Shown here one piece after another: positions 1,626-13,080 of a stretch of 64,000 bases of DNA. The notes beneath the pieces were generated by a model, which saw only the letters and a program-made list of their open reading frames with translations, was not told the DNA's origin and made no database searches. The stretch comes from Selaginella moellendorffii (Eukaryota > Plantae > Lycopodiophyta): assembly GCF_000143415.4 (NCBI RefSeq), contig NW_003314297.1:620001-684000 (forward strand), in the 5' to 3' direction. Positions within the stretch are counted from its first letter, which is position 1; every line of letters starts with the position of its first letter. Position numbers and translations under genes: made by a program.

Positions 1626-1764
1626 TAGGTAAAGTTATATTTTCTAGCTCACCTTTTGTGCATAGTACAAACTTTTAAGGAATATATTTAGAATATTGAG
1701 ATATATTTTAAAATATTCCTTTTAAGCTTTTTTATTTGAAATAAATTTTTATTTATTATTAATA

Positions 1765-3498
1765 TAATATGTGTTCATGGAACAGGGAAATGGAATATAG
1801 AAATGTGCATATTAATTAGCCCAAAAACCCTAATTTATATACAAAAGCGAGTGGTCTAGATTTAAATTAATCCGATGGCTACCAAAATCCCACTATACTA
1901 ATATTAATATATGGCATCATAGTTATACATTTGGACTTCACATCATCCCCTCTTCTTGGAATGATGGAAAACCGTCAGGGTTCTCGTGGATAGGCCAAGA
2001 TTTAAAGGAACATTAAAAAGAGGCATTAGTGGATCTATAGATAGTGTTAGTTGTTTCTGATCCCTTTGTACGAAGCATTTTAACCATTGCACATGCATAA
2101 TTTATAAAGGATTAATTTGTTAAATGTCATATTGAACCTCATAAACTTGCAGTCAAACTTGCTGTAACACCTAATATGGTCCTTTATACTGAGCAAGAAG
2201 CCTTTTAGATAAACCATAAAAACAGATTAACACCAAGTCATCTACTTTGTATTTCGCAAGTGGACGATGATGGAACTTGTAATGCTATTATTTATTCCAT
2301 TTGTACATGAAAAGACGGCAAATAACCATCCCAATCTAAATGCTAAAAGTTCATGTACTTTGCAATCATTTTTTTAAAGGTCCGAGTGAACATTCCACCA
2401 AACTGTTTGAGTATGGATGATAAACACTCAATGAAAGTGTGGCATATCCCTAACTGAGACGTCAAAATATAAAATGGCTTTGCCATAAATGTGGGATCAT
2501 TATAAGAATTTGCTCCAAATAAAAATGTTAGAACATCACTCAATTGAGGAGGAAGAATTTAACAACTGTTATAAATGCCCTAACAAGAGCATCAACTTCC
2601 ACCCAACAAGTCAAGTAGTCAGAAGCAATAATGACATACTTATTGCTAACAGTCGATCGTGGAAAAGACCCTATCAAATTAAATGCCACAAACTCAAATA
2701 AATGGGAAACTGCAATTAACTTTAACTATCCTTTTGTAGCACAAGGGGGAGTATTATGAGCTTGGCACCAAATGTAGCTACATACATACTAGATAACATC
2801 ATGTTGCATCTTCGGCCAATAGAAAGACTTACGCAACTTTTCAGTCATACGGTGATGTATTATATGCCCATCTAAAATAGGAGAATCATAGTAAGTGTGG
2901 AGAGAGCATGGAATAAAGATTGAAGGCACCACCAACTGTAAATGATCATCAAAATCCATCCCCACAAAATAAAGAAGACCGTACTCATGCTTTATTTCGT
3001 TAAAGTGGAACTTTTCATTATCCCACTTATGGTGTGTGGCCACATGCCATTTTTATAACAACAATAAAAAATTGAAGTTTTAGCTTTATAATTTATAAAT
3101 TAAAAACTTTTCATATGATTTTGTGTTATAATATTGTGAAATATAAAAAATAAATTAAAAAACTGATAGAAATATTAATAAATATTAATTAAGTAATAGG
3201 AAATGGCATGTGGACACATGCTAATTAATGTCCCACTTTACTGAATAAGTTCCACTTTAACGAAATAAAGCATACTCAAGGCAATATTAAAAATGTAAAT
3301 GTTGAAATAGCAAGTCATCAACAAGTAATACAAAATTCTCAAACCCATCGTGAAGCCTTTGAATTCATAACTCAATCTTTTAGGCCTCAAGAACCTTGTT
3401 AAGAAAAGGGAAATCTTGTTTTGCACCTTGTGAATACTGAACATCAAGTATAACAATCACTGATAGTATGGAATCCTCATCTAAAAATTTCATAGATG
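1765..3498 (-). mobile_element. Degenerate Ty3/Gypsy pol (integrase) relic, left arm of an inverted pair
   Basis: Minus-strand fragments HTYYDSPILDGH...TEKLRKSFYWPKMQHDV (integrase zinc-binding region) and RTFKKMIAKYMNF*HLDWDGYL (integrase core), with many stops. Confidence 0.75.
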
Positions 3499-4750
3499 TG
3501 TAAGACATAAATCTTTATGCCCCAAAGTGGAGCCAAAAGTGTACCATATAATAATGGTTGAAGCAGAAGTCCAATGAGCATAACATGTTTAAACAAAATG
3601 CTTCAACTTAGAAAGTTAAAAGCAAGAGTGGAACTCCAAACAAACTGCTCAAGGAATGAGCATGAAATAATTGGTGAATGAGTCTTTAAAATTAGACATA
3701 AAAAAAATTGACATATGGCAAGTGTTGTGACATATGGAAGTGTCGGGATCGAGTCTAAAAAAAGTCCGAGATGGAGTATAAGAAGGAGTCTGAGATGTGA
3801 TTGTCTCCTAGACCTTGGGGGGTTTACTGAGCTCCAAAGAATAGTAGAGAAGACTTCAATGGAACTAGTTTGGCCAAGAAAAGCCAGTGTGACCAAAGAA
3901 GGCTATACTTATGTGAGGGGTGATGATATAATCATTAAGGAGTTTAAGGTTAGAGTGAATACAGACAGACAAACAAGGTAACTTAGTGAAGTGTTCAAGA
4001 GCCAACTCTAGCTCCTTTAGGAGATCAAATGGTCGATACTTCTAATCTAAATGTGGGTGGCATTACTTACTTGGATATTTAGTATGGCTTATTAGAATCT
4101 CGCTCTAACCAAATGGCTGAGGCATCCAAAGGTGGAAGGTGGGGAGAGTACCCATGAGACTCACGTAGGGCCATGGTATTTCGAAATATTGTCCCAAGGT
4201 CCCAACGTGAAAAGGAAGAGGAAGAATCCTCTTGTGTAAAAACCAAGGATGCAGTCATGTGATGAGGAAGTCCCAAAGGTAAATAGAACTTAGTGGTTAG
4301 GCCTTTAAAACCAAACCCAGTGGCAATGTTGGCAAATATTGTTAAGGATAGAGAGAGACTTGATAGGGACTAAAAAAAGGATATTGGGGAAGGGTGTTCC
4401 CTATATCTTTAGGCATCTTGAAGATGTTATGGTGTGGTCATAGGATGACCACTCATGGACGGATGGTTTAGTTTTTGGGAGATAAGATTGTGGTGTATAG
4501 TCTTGGATTACCAGTGCGATAAAGGGGAATAGATATAGTCTTAGCATAATAAGCAGATATATGTTTGTTATGGGATCAAACACATGGAGCACTTGGACCA
4601 AGTGATATGGCAAAGTGGTATAAAGGCCATTCATGGGGCTAATAAGTCCCTAAGTCAGGAATAGGACTTATGAAAGTTGTAAGTGAGACACTTTTAAATG
4701 GTTGAAGGTGTGGTTAAGTAATTAAAATAGAATGGAAAATTTAGTCGCTC
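3499..4750. repeat. Dispersed repeat, probably LTR-retroelement derived; inverted copy at ~35290-37224
   Basis: ORF segment MELVWPRKASVTKEGYTYVRGDDIIIKEFKV matches MESVWPRKATVTKEGYTYVLGDDISINESKV at 36444..36782(-). 4400-4740 is the reverse complement of ~35300-35660. Confidence 0.7.
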
Positions 4751-5048
4751 ACAATTTCATTATTAAAGTAAAAAAACTTAGTTGTACTGCTCGGTTGCCC
4801 CTAAAGCTTTACATATATGGTTATTCATCACATAAGGAGTTTTATGGTTGATATTGATGCCCTTTTATAAGTTCTTCTCCCTTCTTTGATCTCTTTTTTT
4901 ATTCCTAACGAGCTCATTGTTCCAATATCTATGGATTTTTTTGAGAAGGATTCTATATCATTAACAATTGTTATTCAGTATTCATAAGGTACGGAGCAAA
5001 ATTTGCCTTCTCTTGACGAGGTTTGTGAGGCTCAAAAGGTTGAGCCGT

Positions 5049-6144
5049 TGTTACGAATGTGACCGGGTATCGAAAGTTACCTATCGGTTAGTCTTTACAG
5101 ACACTCTTACCTTACTGCCACGATGGCAGGAGGTCGGTATTGCTGGACCCTTTATCAATCCCTCTTGTTCAAGTGTTAGTAAACTAAACTTTGCATCTGT
5201 ACTTGGCCGGATGAGCATAAGGAAGGAATTCCTAGTGTTTATTTAGCTGAGCATACTTGGCCCGGCTTGTTAGTTCTCTTTTGCTCTGTCTTGCACTGGC
5301 TTGACAAGAACCCTCGCGTATTGAGATTGGTCCCTCAATATCGCTACATGATAGCTTACTGTATCTGCCAAACACTTTCATTATCATGCCCTTTGTGTTA
5401 GTCTCAATTTGGTCCCAAATACTATTTATGGAAAGTATCCAGATTTGCTTATTTGGCATATGTACGGAATGTAGAGATTGTCTTGAACACAACGGTGTTC
5501 GTTCCATATCCAAATTCGCAATCTAGGGACATTCCATATTTAGTAAGTTTCGAGCTTGTCCCAGAGACTAACTCCTGATACTAAAGGAGGCNNNNNNNNN
5601 NNNNNNNNNNNNNNNNNNNNNNNNNNNNNNNNNNNNNNNNNNNNNNNNNNNNNNNNNNNNNNNNNNNNNNNNNNNNNNNNNNNNNNNNNNNCAGCTAGCA
5701 TGGTGTGGAACTTGGGCTTAGACCCAGGCCGGACGCAGAACAAAGACAGGCATGCAAGTGGGAGCTAGACTATGCCTCAGGTTAGTCGGCTATGCCAGGG
5801 CTCCGTTCTGCGTGCTGGTCTTGGCATTGGGATACAGGTTACTCTAGGATTGTTCCAAGTTGCTCCAGGCTCTTGTCCCTTTGCTCCTTGGGCTTTATGC
5901 TCGGGAGTTGCTCTGTGGTTCGGTTCTATCACTCCTTGGCTACGTGTTTGGAAGTTTGGCACCGTTCCTTCATTCAGTGGCCCAAGGCCCTGAACCTTGG
6001 GTTCCTATGGACACGTGGCATGGACACGTGGTATGTGACATGTGGCATCTGTCACGTGGCACAAAGAGGGTTTAGGTTCCGCTTTGTGGTGTTATCCTAT
6101 GGTAAATCACCATAGGATAAAAGGTCAAAACCACGTGCGCTACA
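5049..6144. mobile_element. Solo LTR (TG...CA) with 5-bp TSD GCCGT; contains an assembly gap
   Basis: gccgt|TGTTACG...GCGCTACA|gccgt. It splits the host repeat (KRLSR | GFEGFVMGL). A second copy lies at 37648-38656. Confidence 0.8.
5592..5691. other. Assembly gap (100 N)
   Basis: Run of n in the sequence. Confidence 1.
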
Positions 6145-9100
6145 GCCGTGGATTTGAAGGTTTTGTGATGGGTTTAAAAATTCTGCATTACTTGCTAATG
6201 GCTTACCATTTTGGCATTTATATTCTCAATATCACCTTAAAGACGACTTTTTTTATTTTATAAGGATGAATCTTAATGATCATTTATGGTTGGGTGGTGC
6301 TTTCAATCTTTATTCCATGCTTTCTCCACGTCTACCATGATTCTCCTATTTTATATGGGTATATAAAACATCATCGTATGATTGAAAAGCTGCATAAGTC
6401 TTTTTATTAGCCAACGATGCAATATGATATTATTCAGTATATATGTAGTTGTATTTGGTGTAAAGTTTGTAATACTCTCCTTTGTGTTGTGGAAGGATAG
6501 TTCAAATCAATTGCAATTTTTTGTTTGTTTTAGTTAGTGGTGTTTGATTTGATAAGTCGATTACTAACAATGAGTATATTATTATTATTTCTAACTATTT
6601 GACTCACTTGGTGGAAGCCAATGCTCTTACTAATGTGTTTGCAACTACTATTGGCTACTTTCTCCTAAATTGTGTGGTGTTCTAGCATTCTTTTCCGAAA
6701 CAAATTCTCTTAGATAATGATTTTATATTTATAATTGAGGTATTTCACATTTTAACATCTTAGTAAGGGACTTTTGCAAGTGTTTATCAGTCTTAAATAA
6801 ATTGTTTGGTGGAATGGCTCATTTGAACTTTCAAAGGATGATCATAAAATACATGAACTTTTAGCATTTGGATTGGGATGGTTATTTGCTATTTCTTTAG
6901 TATGTATATATAATAGGGGTACAAAATTTTATTGGTACTTTACCATATAAACTCTTATATGGTTAAAATCTGATACTGCCAATAGAGTTGAGTTTACTTT
7001 CATAATTGTCGTAAGTTGCCAATACTAGATCTTGGGATCATTATTTGACAAGAATTCTTCCATTTATCTAAGTAAAGCTTCTTGAACACTTAGGCTACAT
7101 ACAAGTGGAATAATAACAATGCTACAACTCCCATCATTGTCCATCCGCAAAATACAAATTGAATGATTTAATGCTAGTCTATTTTCCCAATCTTACAATA
7201 TGTGGTTTATCTAAAGGGATCATTGTTTAGTAGAAAGGACCATATTGGATGTTACGGCAAGTTGGAGATGGTACATAATTTGTTTAAAGGGCTTTTTGTT
7301 CAATGTAAGAGACCATATCATGTATTGCAACAAGTTGAATCACAAGCATGACATTCAATAAATTGATCCTCTAAAAATTATGCATATGTAGCAACTAAAA
7401 CACTTAATACAAAGGGATTAAGAATAACTAGCACCATCTATAAATCCACCTGTGCCTCTTCTTGATATTCCTTTAGATCCCAACTTATCAACTAGAGAAT
7501 TCTAACGGCCTTCCATCATTCCAAGAGCAGGGGATGATATGAGCTCCAAGTGTATAGTTATGATGCCGTATACTAATATTAATATAATGAATTTTGATAG
7601 TCATTGGATTGGTTTCAATTTAGACGATTTACTCTTGTATATAAGCTAGGGATTTTAGGTTAATTAATATGAACATTTCAATATTCTATTTTCATCTTCC
7701 ATGCACTCACAAATATATATTTTACTATGTATTGCCCAACATATGCTGCCCAGCTAGTAAAATATTGTTTTTAATTATTATAATTTTTTATATTAAAAAC
7801 TAAATTGGAATAATATCAAAAAAATAAATATTGTATTCCAATTTGAAAGATATGAAGGGAATTATACTCAGAAAATGCTAGATAAATATAAAAATCAATA
7901 ATTTTATACAAATATTTTACTCTTATAAACTTGATAATATCTAGGCATAAGTACGAATAAATATTCATTAATAAAAAATATTAGATACAATTTTTTTGGA
8001 AATATAAATATTTAGAAAACTACCCAACTCAAAAAAATATAAAATTGGAATTTTTATTATTAATTATATGTTATATGGAAATTATATTTTTACTTAAGAT
8101 AAAATTGTATTAACATTTTATTAAATAAGAGATTAATTACTAAGAATAATTATTACTAGTTTATTTATTAGCAAGACATTACTTAATTATACATTTTTCT
8201 TAGAATATAAAACAATAAATGTGTAGGAACATTAATATATTACTACCCAGATCCATCTACAAAAACAATTATTAATAATATATTTTATATATATATATGT
8301 TATAGAAACTGTAAATTCAAATATTTTATTCCATAGTATTATGTTCAAATAAACTATGTTTGCAGTTAGGAAATATCTAAGTCTACATTTAAAAATATAA
8401 TAAATACTTTTATTATTAAAGTTGTTTATTTTGTTTGTATTAACAATTAGAGCTTTGATCGTCCTACACACTGATAAAAATAAACCAACCCACATTTTGT
8501 ATATCAATCACTTGGTGTTTGATTCCATATGTTTTAGTGATATCTAAACAGGCCATCTTATATAAAATATAATTTTCTTATTATATTTATAAATACTGTT
8601 ATATTAAATTATAAAAGTTAATTTTGACCTAAAATATTCAAATATTATAAGCTTAGGTGTATTTTATTCATAAAGCATTAAAAATAAATTTACTCTCTTG
8701 GGAAACAATTAAACAAAATGCGAATCTCTGCCAATTTTGGATTTTGATCTGGTGATGCCACCAAAGACATACATAATTTATCACCTCATAGTACAACTTG
8801 GATTAACAAGAGCACTGTGCATTGCCACAAGATCTTTTAATACCACACTTCCCATCACCATGGGCATCACAATTAACAAGAAATAGAACCTACTATCAAA
8901 GTCAAGCCAGCACCCAACATGCAATGTCCTTATCTCTGCACCCATGAATTCACCTAATAAAGAAAGTAAAAACCTTACATCCTGATGACCATGTGGATTT
9001 GCCACAATGAGGAGCAGGTAAGCCATGAATGCCCCTCCTCTAGTGCCAGTGGCTGAAAAACTACATGCCAAGCAATTTTTCATTATGATGCCCAACATAA

Positions 9101-9616
9101 ATCCTCTTGGCATTGGGCACAACAATAGGAGTGCCAATCTTTGGGTTTCTGGAGCAATGCAAGCTTCTAGGCCTCAGCAATGCTAGTCAGTGGCCACCTC
9201 CTGTCCTGCTTCCCTTGGAAACTTCGTGGCTGAGGAATTGCAGTAAAAGGAGAGTTTTATCCCTCTTGCAGTGCACAAAGAAACAGGTGTAGCTCACACC
9301 TTTTCCCCCAGCCCAGCCATGCCATGTGCCCATTGGCCAGCCCAAACTTTGCAAAAATATTTCAGGACACATAGTTAAAAACTGATATTTACCAAATTAC
9401 CCCCCATCAGATGGCTTTGATTGGCTGGATTTGGCAGCCAACTCCTCTTTATTATTGTAGATTTTGTAATTATATTTAAAAATTATGTATATTAATATAA
9501 ATATATGGTATTTATCTTCTAGAAAATAATTAAATCTCATTGACATTAATTTTTAAAATCGGTAAAATATTTAATTATTTAGGTTTTACATGTAACCCTA
9601 AGCCTTAGGGTTCTTA

Positions 9617-10891
9617 ATGGCGAGGAAGACGCTGGTGCTAGACGTGTGCGGCACGCTCATGTGTGAGATCAATGCCCGTGTAAGTCCCGAGCTGGTGGGA
9701 TCCGCGATCCGTCTCCAAGGCGACGAGCTCGGGCGATCGATGATCCTCAAGCGACCGCATCTTGGCAAGTTTCTCGAGAGAATGGCAAAGCTTTTTGATG
9801 TGGTGGCCTTCACGTCGCGCGCGCAGCGCCGCGCAGAGACGATTCTGGACGTGCTAGATCCCGCGAAGGAGTTCTTCAGCCGCAGGCTCTACCTGGATTC
9901 GTGCAAGAAGGGGGGCAAAGTGAAAGACTTGGCGGTGCTGGAGCGGCCCCTAAATCGAGTGATCATCGTCGACGACACGAGCTCCAAGTGCGTGCTGAAT
10001 CCGGACAACTTGGTCCTCGTCTCGCGATTCAAGAGGCACAATCTCAGTACTGATCGCGGGCTTTTGGATCTAATTCCATTCCTCGAGGAGCTCTCCAAGG
10101 AAGAAGTAGAGGACGTGCGACCGGTGATCCATGCAAGGTTTGGGAAGAAGGTGATGAATGTGCTCAAGCAGCAAGAGCGAGATAGCGATCATCAGACCGG
10201 CGAAACCAAGATGAAAGGCCACCAGGTGGAGGGAAGTGGCCGGATCAACGCTCTGGGTCGGGCACTGACCAAGATCTTGAGGCACCGAGCTGCGGAGCTC
10301 AACCTGGAGATGCGCAGCGATGGCTTTTGCAAGGTGGCGGACCTCCTCCGGCTGGATTTCACAACGCGGTCCAAGGTTCCACTGAGCGCGCACACTGTGG
10401 AGGAGGTGCTCCAGGCCGTGGAGCAAGACTCCAAGGAGAGGCTCGCGACGATGGTGGACGAGAGTGGCGAGCTTCTGATTCGAGCAAACCAGGGGCACAC
10501 GCTGCTCGATGCCGTTTGTAGCGACGATCTGCTGGAAGAGATCTCCATAGACGATAACTTGCTGGCGGTGTGTGTCCATGGAACTTTCAAGCACGCGTTG
10601 CCGGGCATCTTGCGGGATGGCCTCAAGACGATGGGAAGGAAGCACGTCCACTTTGCGGCTGGCCTGCCCGGAGCCGGAGAAGTCGTGAGCGGAATGCGAG
10701 GCAACTGCGATGCTCTCGTCTTTGTAAACGCTGCTCGAGCTATGGCGGACGGGATGAAGTTCTACGTCTCGAAAAACGGGGTGGTGCTCACGGAAGGCTT
10801 TGAGCAGTGTGTCCCTGCCAAGTACTTCGACAAGATTGTGGAGTGGCCGAGCAATGTCCTCCTCCACGATCGCGAAGAGATCACCGAGTAG
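9617..10891 (+). CDS. Intronless fusion protein: FCP1/SCP (NIF-type) HAD phosphatase-like domain + tRNA 2'-phosphotransferase (Tpt1/KptA)
   Basis: The N-half has KTLVLDVCGTL, KRPHLGKFL, FTS, ILDVLDP, RLYLDSC and VKDL...RVIIVDD. The C-half has ALTKILRH, KERL, IRANQGH, VHGT, GLKTMGRKHVHF, SGMR and SKNGVVLTEG. It is a single 424-aa ORF. Confidence 0.9.
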   Translation: MARKTLVLDVCGTLMCEINARVSPELVGSAIRLQGDELGRSMILKRPHLGKFLERMAKLFDVVAFTSRAQRRAETILDVLDPAKEFFSRRLYLDSCKKGGKVKDLAVLERPLNRVIIVDDTSSKCVLNPDNLVLVSRFKRHNLSTDRGLLDLIPFLEELSKEEVEDVRPVIHARFGKKVMNVLKQQERDSDHQTGETKMKGHQVEGSGRINALGRALTKILRHRAAELNLEMRSDGFCKVADLLRLDFTTRSKVPLSAHTVEEVLQAVEQDSKERLATMVDESGELLIRANQGHTLLDAVCSDDLLEEISIDDNLLAVCVHGTFKHALPGILRDGLKTMGRKHVHFAAGLPGAGEVVSGMRGNCDALVFVNAARAMADGMKFYVSKNGVVLTEGFEQCVPAKYFDKIVEWPSNVLLHDREEITE

Positions 10892-10917
10892 AGCAAGTTC
10901 TCGGTTGCTAAAGAAAA

Positions 10918-13080
10918 CTAAACGATTTCTTGACTACAAAGGTTGGAAGCCATAACATAAGTTTGCGGCTTGTGCAGGTCGAGCTTTCTCGTAGCACCGC
11001 TCCCTCGATGCTTTTGGGTCTTGCAAGCTCCCAGAAAGCACGTCCACTCCACGAGATCTGGAACAAACGGCATCGTCTCGACGAGCTCCTCAGCGTCTCT
11101 CAAGTATCCGGCCCGACCCACGAGATCCACCATGCAGCAGTAGTGCTGCTTGGTGGCTGGCACTTCAAAGTCGAAGCCCATGGACACGAAGCACTGGCGC
11201 GCGTCGTAGAGGCGGCCTCCATGGCTGGAGCCGAGAAGAACACAGATGAAAGTGGCGTCGTCGGCTGGGACGGCATCCACGGACATGCTGCAAAACAGCT
11301 CCATCGTTTGCTCGAAGCTACCTTCGCCAACCTTGTGAGAATTCGCCGCAAGGATGGAGTTCCAGGAGATGGTGTCGCGGTCTGGCATTGCGAGCAGGAA
11401 GGCCTTTGCTCTGGAGAGGCTTTGGCTGTGGCTGTAGGCAACGAGCATCGAGTTCCAGGAGACGATGTCCTTCTCGGGCATGGCGGCGAAGAATTCCTCG
11501 GCCTGCTGGAGATACCCGTTCCGGGCATACGCGAAGAGCATCGCCGTCGAGGCGACCGTGTCTTGCTCGGGCATTCCATTGAACGCGCTCTTTACCTCGT
11601 CAATATGCCCGCTCCGGGCATATGCCACCAGCATGGAGGTCCATGCGATGGCATCTTTCTCTGGCATCTCATCGAATATTTTCTTGGCCTCTTCCAGGTT
11701 GCCTCGCTCGGAATAGGCGTCGATCATAAAGGTGGCGCTCCCGGCGCTCCTCTCGGGAATATTCTCAAACAAATGTTTTGCCTTGTCAAGATGCCCGGAT
11801 CCGGCATTTGCAGCCAGCATGGCAGTCCACGTCGCTAAGTTAGTCTCCGGCATGGACGAAAAGAGACGCGTGGCATCATCCTGGCGCTTGGTTTGCAAGC
11901 ACGCTGCTTGCATGGAGTTCCACGACAGCACATCTCTCTCGGGCATTTTGTCAAAAAGGCTCTTTGCCAAGGCAAACTCCTTGTGCTCGGCATATGCCAT
12001 GAGCAGGGAGTTCCACGAGATTAGATTCTTTTCGGACATACCGTCAAACACCCCCTTGGCCTGGTCTAGCTGAGACCTGCCGGCATATGCCGCCAACATG
12101 GCGTTCTTGGCGATCATGTCCTGCTCCGGCATGGAATCAAACATACGGCGCGCTGCCAGAATATCCCCGAAATGGGCATATGCCGTCAGCATGCACGTCC
12201 AGCACACAAGATCCCTCTCGGGGATGCTGTCGAATATCTCTTTTGCCTGGTCGGTTCTGCCCGCCTCCGCAAGCGCGCCCAGCATCACCGTCCACGACAC
12301 GATGCTTCGGGCGGGCATTTGCCGGAAGACGGTGCTACCTTCCTCAAAACGCCCTCCCTCGAGTAGAGCCGTCAGGCAAGTATCCCAGGTGATCTGGTTT
12401 CGATTCCTGGCCGGCATGGATTTGAAGAGGTTCCACGCGGCATCCAGTTGGCCGTTTTGGGAATATCCTGCCAGCAGCGCGTTCCACGAGAACACATCCC
12501 TCTCGAGCATCTCGTCAAAGATTCGTTTTGCCTGTGCGATCTTTCCCCGCTTGGACAGCGCGGAGAGCATCATTGTGGAAGATACCGTGTCAAGCTCAGG
12601 CATCCTGGGGAAGAGATTCATAGATTCTTTCAGATGCCCTCTTTGGGCATATGCCGAAAGCATGGCTGTCCACGAGATAAGCGTCCTCTCCGGCATCGCG
12701 TCAAAGATATTCCTGGCATCTTCCAGATGCCCTCGCTGGGCATACGCGCTGAGCATGACATTGAAGGTGACCACATCCCTCTCGGGCATCCGGTCGAAGA
12801 GATTTCTGGCATCGTGGAGATTCCCGTTCTGGGCATAACCCGTGAGCATCAGCGCCCAGCTGTAATCATTCCTGGACGGAATGGAATCGAAGACTCGCCT
12901 CGCGAGGTCGACGCTCCCGCATCGCGAGTACATTTGGAGCAGAAGATTCGAGAGGAAAGTGTTTGTGATCCCGGGTGATGATTTAAGCAGCTCGGCGTGC
13001 AGATCTTTGGCCTGTGACAGCGTCCGGCACGATCGAATTCGCGAAACCGCGCTCGAATCTCCGCTGTGCTGCCCATTCAT
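10918..13080 (-). CDS. PLS-class pentatricopeptide repeat protein with tandem ~31-aa repeats and truncated E domain (no DYW)
   Basis: Repeated SW(N/T)xMLxAYAxxGxLxxAxxxFxxMPERD motifs. The C-terminus has HYCCMVDLVGRAG..AEELVETMPFVPD..WTCFLGAC. Confidence 0.95.
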   Translation of the reverse strand: MNGQHSGDSSAVSRIRSCRTLSQAKDLHAELLKSSPGITNTFLSNLLLQMYSRCGSVDLARRVFDSIPSRNDYSWALMLTGYAQNGNLHDARNLFDRMPERDVVTFNVMLSAYAQRGHLEDARNIFDAMPERTLISWTAMLSAYAQRGHLKESMNLFPRMPELDTVSSTMMLSALSKRGKIAQAKRIFDEMLERDVFSWNALLAGYSQNGQLDAAWNLFKSMPARNRNQITWDTCLTALLEGGRFEEGSTVFRQMPARSIVSWTVMLGALAEAGRTDQAKEIFDSIPERDLVCWTCMLTAYAHFGDILAARRMFDSMPEQDMIAKNAMLAAYAGRSQLDQAKGVFDGMSEKNLISWNSLLMAYAEHKEFALAKSLFDKMPERDVLSWNSMQAACLQTKRQDDATRLFSSMPETNLATWTAMLAANAGSGHLDKAKHLFENIPERSAGSATFMIDAYSERGNLEEAKKIFDEMPEKDAIAWTSMLVAYARSGHIDEVKSAFNGMPEQDTVASTAMLFAYARNGYLQQAEEFFAAMPEKDIVSWNSMLVAYSHSQSLSRAKAFLLAMPDRDTISWNSILAANSHKVGEGSFEQTMELFCSMSVDAVPADDATFICVLLGSSHGGRLYDARQCFVSMGFDFEVPATKQHYCCMVDLVGRAGYLRDAEELVETMPFVPDLVEWTCFLGACKTQKHRGSGATRKLDLHKPQTYVMASNLCSQEIV

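Follow-up and report, generated by a model that had tools for sequence, protein, structure and literature searches.

A transcribed intronless gene of Selaginella moellendorffii joins an SCP-type NIF domain with an altered catalytic motif to a complete Tpt1

The NAD+-dependent RNA 2'-phosphotransferase Tpt1 (KptA) is kept by many organisms without a known source of 2'-phosphate, and it can ADP-ribosylate nucleic-acid ends. The roles of Tpt1 beyond tRNA splicing are an open question, and a naturally fused partner domain can give a hint to where or on what a Tpt1 acts. In the HAD superfamily, the second Asp of the DxDxT motif (position D+2) is the general acid/base, and members with another residue at D+2, such as the P-type ATPases (Thr), have long-lived aspartyl-phosphates. 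The human small phosphatase SCP1, a HAD enzyme with a NIF (FCP1-homology) domain, uses Asp96 as the nucleophile, and Asp98 assists catalysis (PMC7281111). The essential tetrad of the C. thermocellum Tpt1 consists of Arg18, His19, Arg68 and Arg121 (PMC6333775). A fused Tpt1 has been described in fission yeast (Tpt1-Yae1), where the effect of the fusion was called obscure (PMC12810181). An intronless gene joining a NIF domain to a complete Tpt1 was identified in the lycophyte Selaginella moellendorffii, in a stretch of 64,000 nucleotides (nt) of contig NW_003314297.1 (positions 620,001 to 684,000, forward strand; assembly GCF_000143415.4), referred to here as the window. The favoured reading, held with moderate confidence, is a transcribed and selectively maintained two-domain gene in which an active Tpt1 is tethered to a catalytically impaired, phosphate-binding NIF module.

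As in fission yeast, a lineage-restricted Tpt1 is joined to an unrelated domain in one polypeptide. The fission yeast partner is Yae1 and lies at the C-terminus, whereas the partner here is NIF and lies at the N-terminus, and the fission yeast fused gene is the essential tRNA-splicing enzyme, whereas plain paralogs coexist with the fusion in Selaginella (PMC12810181). The NIF partner belongs to a family whose members read or remove phospho-Ser on the tail of RNA polymerase II (Pol II).

The gene is one uninterrupted open reading frame (ORF) of 424 amino acids (aa), with an ATG start and the stop codon included, in the ORF listing (Table 1). This frame cannot be extended in the 5' direction without splicing, because an in-frame TAA lies at 9599-9601, six codons upstream of the ATG. 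Both Pfam families are matched over their full length: NIF (PF03031) with E 1.4e-37, profile positions 1-160 of 160 and 129.3 bits against a curated cut-off of 21.8, and PTS_2-RNA (PF01885) with E 2.9e-52, profile positions 5-177 of 177 and 177.7 bits against a cut-off of 26. The description in the original prediction of a single intronless ORF joining two complete domains is therefore borne out by the ORF and the Pfam matches. The two halves are alike in GC content at third codon positions (0.74 and 0.73), and their overall GC is equal too.

In GenBank (GCA_000143415.2), the ORF is split into a partial 131-aa NIF model (9740-10132), which has no stop of its own, and a 245-aa Tpt1 model, which begins at Met180 (window 10154). 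The Tpt1 part matches exactly this 245-aa protein, which is placed on scaffold GL377601.1. The scaffold of the second haplotype, GL377572.1 (locus L004), has this ORF too, with the same neighbouring genes, and there the allelic copy is a single 423-aa RefSeq protein, XP_002966730.2, which has both domains and is named 'putative tRNA 2'-phosphotransferase'. A single gene underlies the two partial GenBank models, and the annotation is corrected here. An assembly chimera, which the original prediction had allowed for, is excluded, since GL377572.1 has the same ORF and RNA contigs are contiguous across it.

The catalytic tetrad was mapped by a HMMER alignment to 6ede and a 63-row Tpt1 alignment. 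It corresponds to R222, H223, R289 and R341 of the fusion, and all four residues are kept. Further positions that are kept include Q292-G293-H294, H321-G322-T323, H343, H345, S358 and N387, so that all 15 checked Tpt1 positions (the tetrad and 11 other near-invariant positions), both catalytic residues and residues of the NAD lobe, are intact. An earlier reading of a complete catalytic set with HGT and RKHVHF holds, except that its 'KER' is no member of the tetrad; the fourth Arg lies in GRKHVHF. The best PDB sequence match of the C-terminal half is mammalian TRPT1 (E 1.5e-32). In an AlphaFold2 (AF2) model of the full protein, residues 210-424 mostly have pLDDT above 90, and the predicted structure and Foldseek support the two-lobe Tpt1 fold, with a winged-helix RNA lobe and an NAD+ lobe. 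The top Foldseek matches in the AlphaFold database (AFDB) are mostly named 2'-phosphotransferase, with probability 1.00. Compared with plant and mammalian Tpt1/TRPT1 (PDB 7yw2, 7yw3; C. thermocellum 6e3a/6ede), the C-terminal 230 aa of the fusion correspond to a full Tpt1 and share the R-H-R-R tetrad, HGT, GRxHVH, S358 and N387, whereas the N-terminal NIF domain is an addition and the gene is intronless. The Tpt1 domain is 63% identical to a plain 242-aa Tpt1 of the same species. The Tpt1 half is predicted to be catalytically competent, either as an NAD+-dependent RNA 2'-phosphotransferase or in a related ADP-ribosyl transfer.

The N-terminal half matches human CTDSPL/SCP1 best among PDB sequences (E 1e-22), followed by TIM50 (3e-17), CTDNEP1 (1e-13) and FCP1 (0.006). 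An AF2 model of residues 1-192, based on a 20-row NIF alignment, reached pLDDT 89 and pTM 0.88, and Foldseek placed human SCP1 (4ygy) first (TM-score 0.75/0.80, root-mean-square deviation 2.7, 36% identity), followed by SCP2/3, CTDNEP1, TIM50 and FCP1. In the full-length AF2 model, the NIF half has pLDDT below 50 from a thin alignment, and the packing of the domains cannot be judged. A search of AFDB clusters with that model, in which the NIF half is poorly modelled, returned no fusion and matched the Tpt1 half alone. In motif I, the nucleophile Asp9 is kept and Cys11 stands instead of the second Asp, so that the two-aspartate pattern DxDx(T/V) is absent; motifs II (T66), III (K103-D104) and IV (D119-D120) are retained. 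This is the arrangement originally read from the window, and motif I is the same in both haplotypes. The fusion shares with SCP1/CTDSP1 and the other small CTD (carboxy-terminal domain) phosphatases the capless HAD fold, the nucleophile Asp and motifs II-IV. It differs from SCP1 by DVCGT in place of DxDxT, by the lack of an N-terminal extension (it starts at the motif I strand) and by the fused Tpt1. With TIM50 and other inactive NIF proteins it shares a degenerate motif I on a NIF fold, and the working model is a NIF module that binds instead of hydrolysing. Relatives of the fusion are automatically named 'TIM50' in UniRef. Unlike TIM50, the fusion has no presequence or transmembrane segment and still has the nucleophile Asp, and it is nearer to SCP both by the E values above and by TM-score (0.75 against 0.70). 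By its sequence and predicted structure, the NIF half is a member of the fold family, not demonstrably an active phosphatase.

The distribution of the architecture was surveyed by an exhaustive HMMER scan of 1.84 billion cluster representatives, which gave 10,466 matches, of which the best 150 were inspected. Both parts were found in just two other proteins among these 150, a second S. moellendorffii protein (paralog B) and a fragment from the fern Adiantum capillus-veneris. Most matches with several aligned stretches, considered as possible fusions, proved to have Tpt1 or NIF in tandem.

Paralog B (SELMODRAFT_424529, LOC9662741, RefSeq XP_002987040.2, 521 aa) is encoded by an intronless 530-aa ORF (locus L002, 8001-9593) with the same NIF-linker-Tpt1 order; the 450-aa GenBank model adds an intron, although the ORF is continuous without it. 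The NIF half of paralog B is 48% and its Tpt1 half 38% identical to the fusion. Its motif I reads EVWDL, its tetrad is down to a single R (H to Q, R to G, R to S), HGT has become YGT, and its linker is expanded by acidic METKVSDQ-like repeats. With 8 of the 15 checked Tpt1 positions lost, paralog B is predicted to be catalytically dead in both halves.

The Adiantum protein KAI5083648.1 is a 151-aa gene model that contains the C-terminal end of NIF, the linker and the start of Tpt1, with 58% identity to the fusion over 137 aa. No neighbouring Adiantum gene model completes it. At the junction, 36 of 44 residues (82%) are identical to the fusion, whereas any other Tpt1 reaches at most 24 of 42; the C-terminal part of the linker (KMKGHQ-V/I-EGSGRINALGR) is kept in this fragment. 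The long N-terminal extensions of Tpt1 in Diphasiastrum, Psilotum, Riccia, Marchantia, Closterium and Digitaria are not hidden fusions, because they have no Pfam NIF match. A feature search of the ESM Atlas gave NIF-only clusters alone, with scores of 0.69 or less. A word-indexed search, which relies on shared 5-mers, missed the 48%-identical paralog B and whose blanks are not evidence of absence, returned one weak TIM50-like match for the NIF region (1-185) of the whole protein, none for the 185-aa piece alone, and nothing but Tpt1-only proteins among the best 120 matches of the whole protein. The NIF-Tpt1 architecture is rare, as had been expected. The accompanying statement that no such fusion was known stands for the searchable literature, in which the terms NIF/FCP1-homology and Tpt1/KptA together found no paper; it does not stand for databases, since XP_002966730.2 and XP_002987040.2 are already present in RefSeq as predicted proteins.

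The closest NIF relatives found outside the fusion family are tandem proteins with two or four NIF domains (P0137, P0273, P0163 and P0259; those from Cryptomeria japonica, P0137 and P0273, have four). Their motif I alternates between intact (DLDGT/DLDET) and degenerate (DLNGT, ELKGV, NLNGT) forms. They share the 'D-x-D-G-T-L' flavour, with D, N or K at D+2 and D, E or N at the nucleophile position, so that catalytic residues are often lost in this branch.

These motifs bear on an alternative in which the protein is a bifunctional enzyme, with the NIF half an active phosphatase of non-canonical chemistry that works in the same pathway as Tpt1. Cys11 would serve as a substitute proton donor, or a long-lived aspartyl-phosphate would form, and the proposed substrates are an RNA terminal phosphate or the ADP-ribose 1''-phosphate derived from the Tpt1 product. 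The retention of Asp9, T66, K103 and D119-D120 on an SCP1-like fold and the lower allelic pN/pS of the NIF half (0.16, see below) are consistent with such an enzyme, and fusions often unite steps of one pathway. Capless NIF domains, however, are known as phosphatases of macromolecules and not of small molecules, D+2 is free to vary among the close NIF relatives (D, N, K), and the nucleophile is missing as well from the sister paralog. Moreover, the SCP/FCP enzymes that have been studied depend on the second Asp of DxDxT (PMC7281111), and the PDB has an entry for an SCP1 D98A mutant. One report describes some Tpt1 enzymes as acting on terminal phosphates (PMC6573784), which speaks for the bifunctional enzyme; taken together, it is considered unlikely.

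Transcription of the gene is supported by at least 13 RNA-labelled runs, which contain 65-86% of the words sampled from 9400-11000. Logan contigs of four RNA runs (X1, X5, X6 and X7), from four separate studies, were mapped over 8600-11800. Each run gave one contig extending up to 10768 and beginning at 9625 (X1, X5), 9578 (X7) or 9544 (X6), and no joints, gaps or unaligned overhangs were present in the four. The 940 bases upstream had no RNA depth and served as a silent-DNA control; depth was zero over 8600-9455, and X6 alone extends back to 9544. A spike of RNA depth and the break of the contigs at 10768 are due to a 33-nt stretch shared without mismatch with the plain 242-aa Tpt1 gene (Table 1). 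The runs differ at 10 sites inside the ORF, most of which agree with the other haplotype.

The GenBank annotation implies two separate products, a NIF protein and a 245-aa Tpt1 translated from Met180, with the common ORF incidental. The two gene models exist, and contigs cannot prove single molecules. Against this, no stop codon lies between the models, the 131-aa model is partial and stopless, RefSeq has them merged on the allelic scaffold, and the continuous architecture is kept both in paralog B (dS ~1) and across the Adiantum junction. Two separate products are regarded as highly improbable.

Synonymous divergence (dS) and the ratio of non-synonymous to synonymous divergence (dN/dS) were calculated by NG86. 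Between the fusion and paralog B, dS was 1.06 and dN/dS 0.39 in the NIF half, and the corresponding values in the Tpt1 half were 1.34 and 0.36; against the plain 242-aa Tpt1 gene they were 0.89 and 0.35. The two haplotypes (window and L004) differ by 7 synonymous and 5 non-synonymous changes, which gives a non-synonymous to synonymous ratio among alleles (pN/pS) of 0.22 (binomial p 0.010 against neutrality), with 0.16 in the NIF half and 0.30 in the Tpt1 half. These comparisons indicate that both halves are under purifying selection and that the gene is neither young nor drifting, because dS is ~0.9-1.3, dN/dS 0.35-0.39 and allelic pN/pS 0.22. Neutral evolution of one half, a concern raised with the original prediction, was found in neither.

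The same values bear on the proposal of a neutral or decaying chimera, in which a redundant Tpt1 with an acquired NIF exon is heading towards the state of paralog B and the halves are uncoupled. At least two plain Tpt1 genes with intact tetrads are present in the S. moellendorffii genome (242 aa and 290 aa), the D+2 residue of the fusion is already gone, and paralog B is doubly dead, all of which speaks for decay. The allelic pN/pS and the dN/dS against the paralogs in both halves argue against it, as do the 15 intact Tpt1 positions, the expression in at least 13 RNA runs and the conserved fern junction, and a decaying chimera is judged quite unlikely.

The gene had also been proposed to be young and possibly retro-derived, a proposal that the data do not support. 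A recent origin is at odds with the dS values (0.89 against the nearest plain Tpt1, 1.06-1.34 against paralog B), with the low identity of the latter, and with the junction common to the fern. Comparison of the sequences places the architecture before a duplication within the lineage and gives it a specific fern relative. No poly(A) remnant was found after the stop codon of the fusion, where a convergent ORF of a pentatricopeptide repeat (PPR) protein lies 27 nt away, and a NIF parent gene was not found. A 46-nt intron, the only one of the plain 242-aa Tpt1 gene (locus L003), follows codon 13 at a position matching the fusion junction. Since the nearest plain Tpt1 has this one short intron only, the intronless state of the fusion is a weak sign of retroposition, and an origin by exon joining is equally plausible.

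The Tpt1 tree has the form (Smoel_290,(Smoel_242,(fusion B, fusion A))), with supports of 92/90, 94/89 and 91/93, where fusion A is the gene in the window. In approximately unbiased (AU) tests, the placement of all non-fusion vascular-plant Tpt1 in one clade with the fusions outside was rejected (p 0.008), and a lineage of the fusions and the 242-aa gene apart from the remaining Tpt1 was not rejected (p 0.15). An origin before the lycophyte-fern split was considered, and the Tpt1 tree neither supports nor excludes it.

On the favoured reading, an active Tpt1 tethered to an impaired NIF module, the Tpt1 half would carry out NAD+-dependent removal of RNA 2'-phosphate or a related ADP-ribosyl transfer. 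The NIF half would no longer hydrolyse phospho-Ser efficiently, since SCP/FCP phosphatases need the second Asp of DxDxT, and may act mainly as a phosphate/Mg2+-dependent docking or substrate-trapping module that recruits Tpt1 to a phosphorylated partner. This partner may be a protein, for which the Pol II CTD is a candidate, or an RNA end that carries a phosphate. The link between phospho-recognition and RNA end chemistry in the original prediction is likewise hypothetical. Housekeeping tRNA splicing is probably done by the plain Tpt1 paralogs (242 aa and 290 aa), which would leave the fusion free to specialise; such specialisation is probable because both plain genes have intact tetrads. The doubly dead paralog B suggests that the NIF-Tpt1 scaffold can be maintained without catalysis. 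Together, the two plain Tpt1 genes, the fusion with an active-looking Tpt1 and a HAD site altered at one residue, and the doubly dead fusion form a matched natural series. The scope is modest, with one lycophyte genome and one fern fragment, and the function is a prediction.

Several points weigh against this reading. Logan contigs represent contiguous coverage and not single molecules, and they may also fit separate transcripts that overlap, or a product translated from Met180 inside the ORF. Few allelic differences are available (12), and in the Tpt1 half by itself they are not significant (p 0.14). The fern evidence consists of one 151-aa model whose tail diverges past RSDGFSK, and that locus may be truncated or decayed. 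All Selaginella Tpt1 copies fall together in the tree (92/90), a grouping that, if true, is awkward for a fusion that arose before ferns and lycophytes separated. Some chemistry may still be possible with Cys at D+2; alternatively, the NIF half may bind no phospho-ligand of any kind.

A broader interpretation, which is speculative and rather unlikely, sees NIF-Tpt1 as an old, overlooked family of spore-bearing vascular plants (lycophytes and ferns), in which the Asp-x-Cys HAD site has a new job and paralog B is a regulator or decoy. The new job could be the capture of a phosphorylated partner like the Pol II CTD, which would confine 2'-phosphate removal or RNA ADP-ribosylation to a defined place. 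The HAD site could also act directly, with a phosphate of the RNA or the ADP-ribose product as its target.

Table 1. Positions in the window of the NIF-Tpt1 gene and its parts
Feature	Position	Strand	Basis
Complete intronless NIF-Tpt1 coding sequence	9617..10891	+	ORF, Pfam, RNA contigs, allelic RefSeq copy
5' untranslated region, minimum extent	9544..9616	+	RNA contig starts, sequence read
NIF / SCP-type HAD domain, residues 4-168	9626..10120	+	Pfam, AF2, Foldseek
HAD motif I, D9-V-C11-G-T13	9641..9655	+	ORF translation, alignment; same in both haplotypes
Linker of ~30 aa, residues 176-205, includes Met180	10142..10231	+	GenBank models, AF2 model
Tpt1/KptA domain, residues 212-394	10250..10798	+	Pfam, AF2, tetrad mapping
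Tetrad codons	R222-H223 10280-10285; R289 10481-10483; R341 10637-10639	+	alignment mapping
33 nt shared without mismatch with the plain 242-aa Tpt1 gene	10739..10771	+	sequence comparison

Minimal AUG-stop upstream ORFs are known regulatory elements in plants. The 5' untranslated region contains a start-stop element of this kind, ATGTAA at 9590-9595, located 22 nt ahead of the main ATG and within the X6 and X7 contigs. A perfect palindrome, AACCCTAAG-C-CTTAGGGTT, composed of two telobox-like AACCCTAA motifs, is present at 9594-9612, shortly before the start codon; the window contains AACCCTAA 6 times, where 1.44 occurrences are expected. Run X6 has a 10-nt insertion (AAACACTCAC) at 9556 in this region relative to the window.

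The region upstream of the gene (1700-9600) is rich in AT and lacks any ORF that reaches 120 aa. Four co-linear inverted-repeat segments of 64-262 nt, 78-83% complementary, were identified between 1891-2933 and 6293-7589. They suggest a decayed inverted duplication of ~1 kb (~80% identity) around ~3.4 kb of AT-rich, ORF-poor DNA, which is compatible with decayed mobile elements and uninformative on the origin of the fusion.

The convergent PPR ORF downstream is intronless and encodes 720 aa at 10918-13080 (-), or 787 aa in the GenBank model. Its end lies 27 nt past the stop of the fusion, with 26 bases separating the two stop codons. RNA contigs on this ORF have numerous jumps and loose ends, a pattern that repeated PPR units and paralogs would be expected to produce. 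A PPR gene also lies head-to-head upstream of the plain 242-aa Tpt1 gene in L003. At 3001-5711 of that locus, the 242-aa gene overlaps a poly(ADP-ribose) glycohydrolase (PARG) gene tail-to-tail, so that two ADP-ribose-related genes are neighbours.

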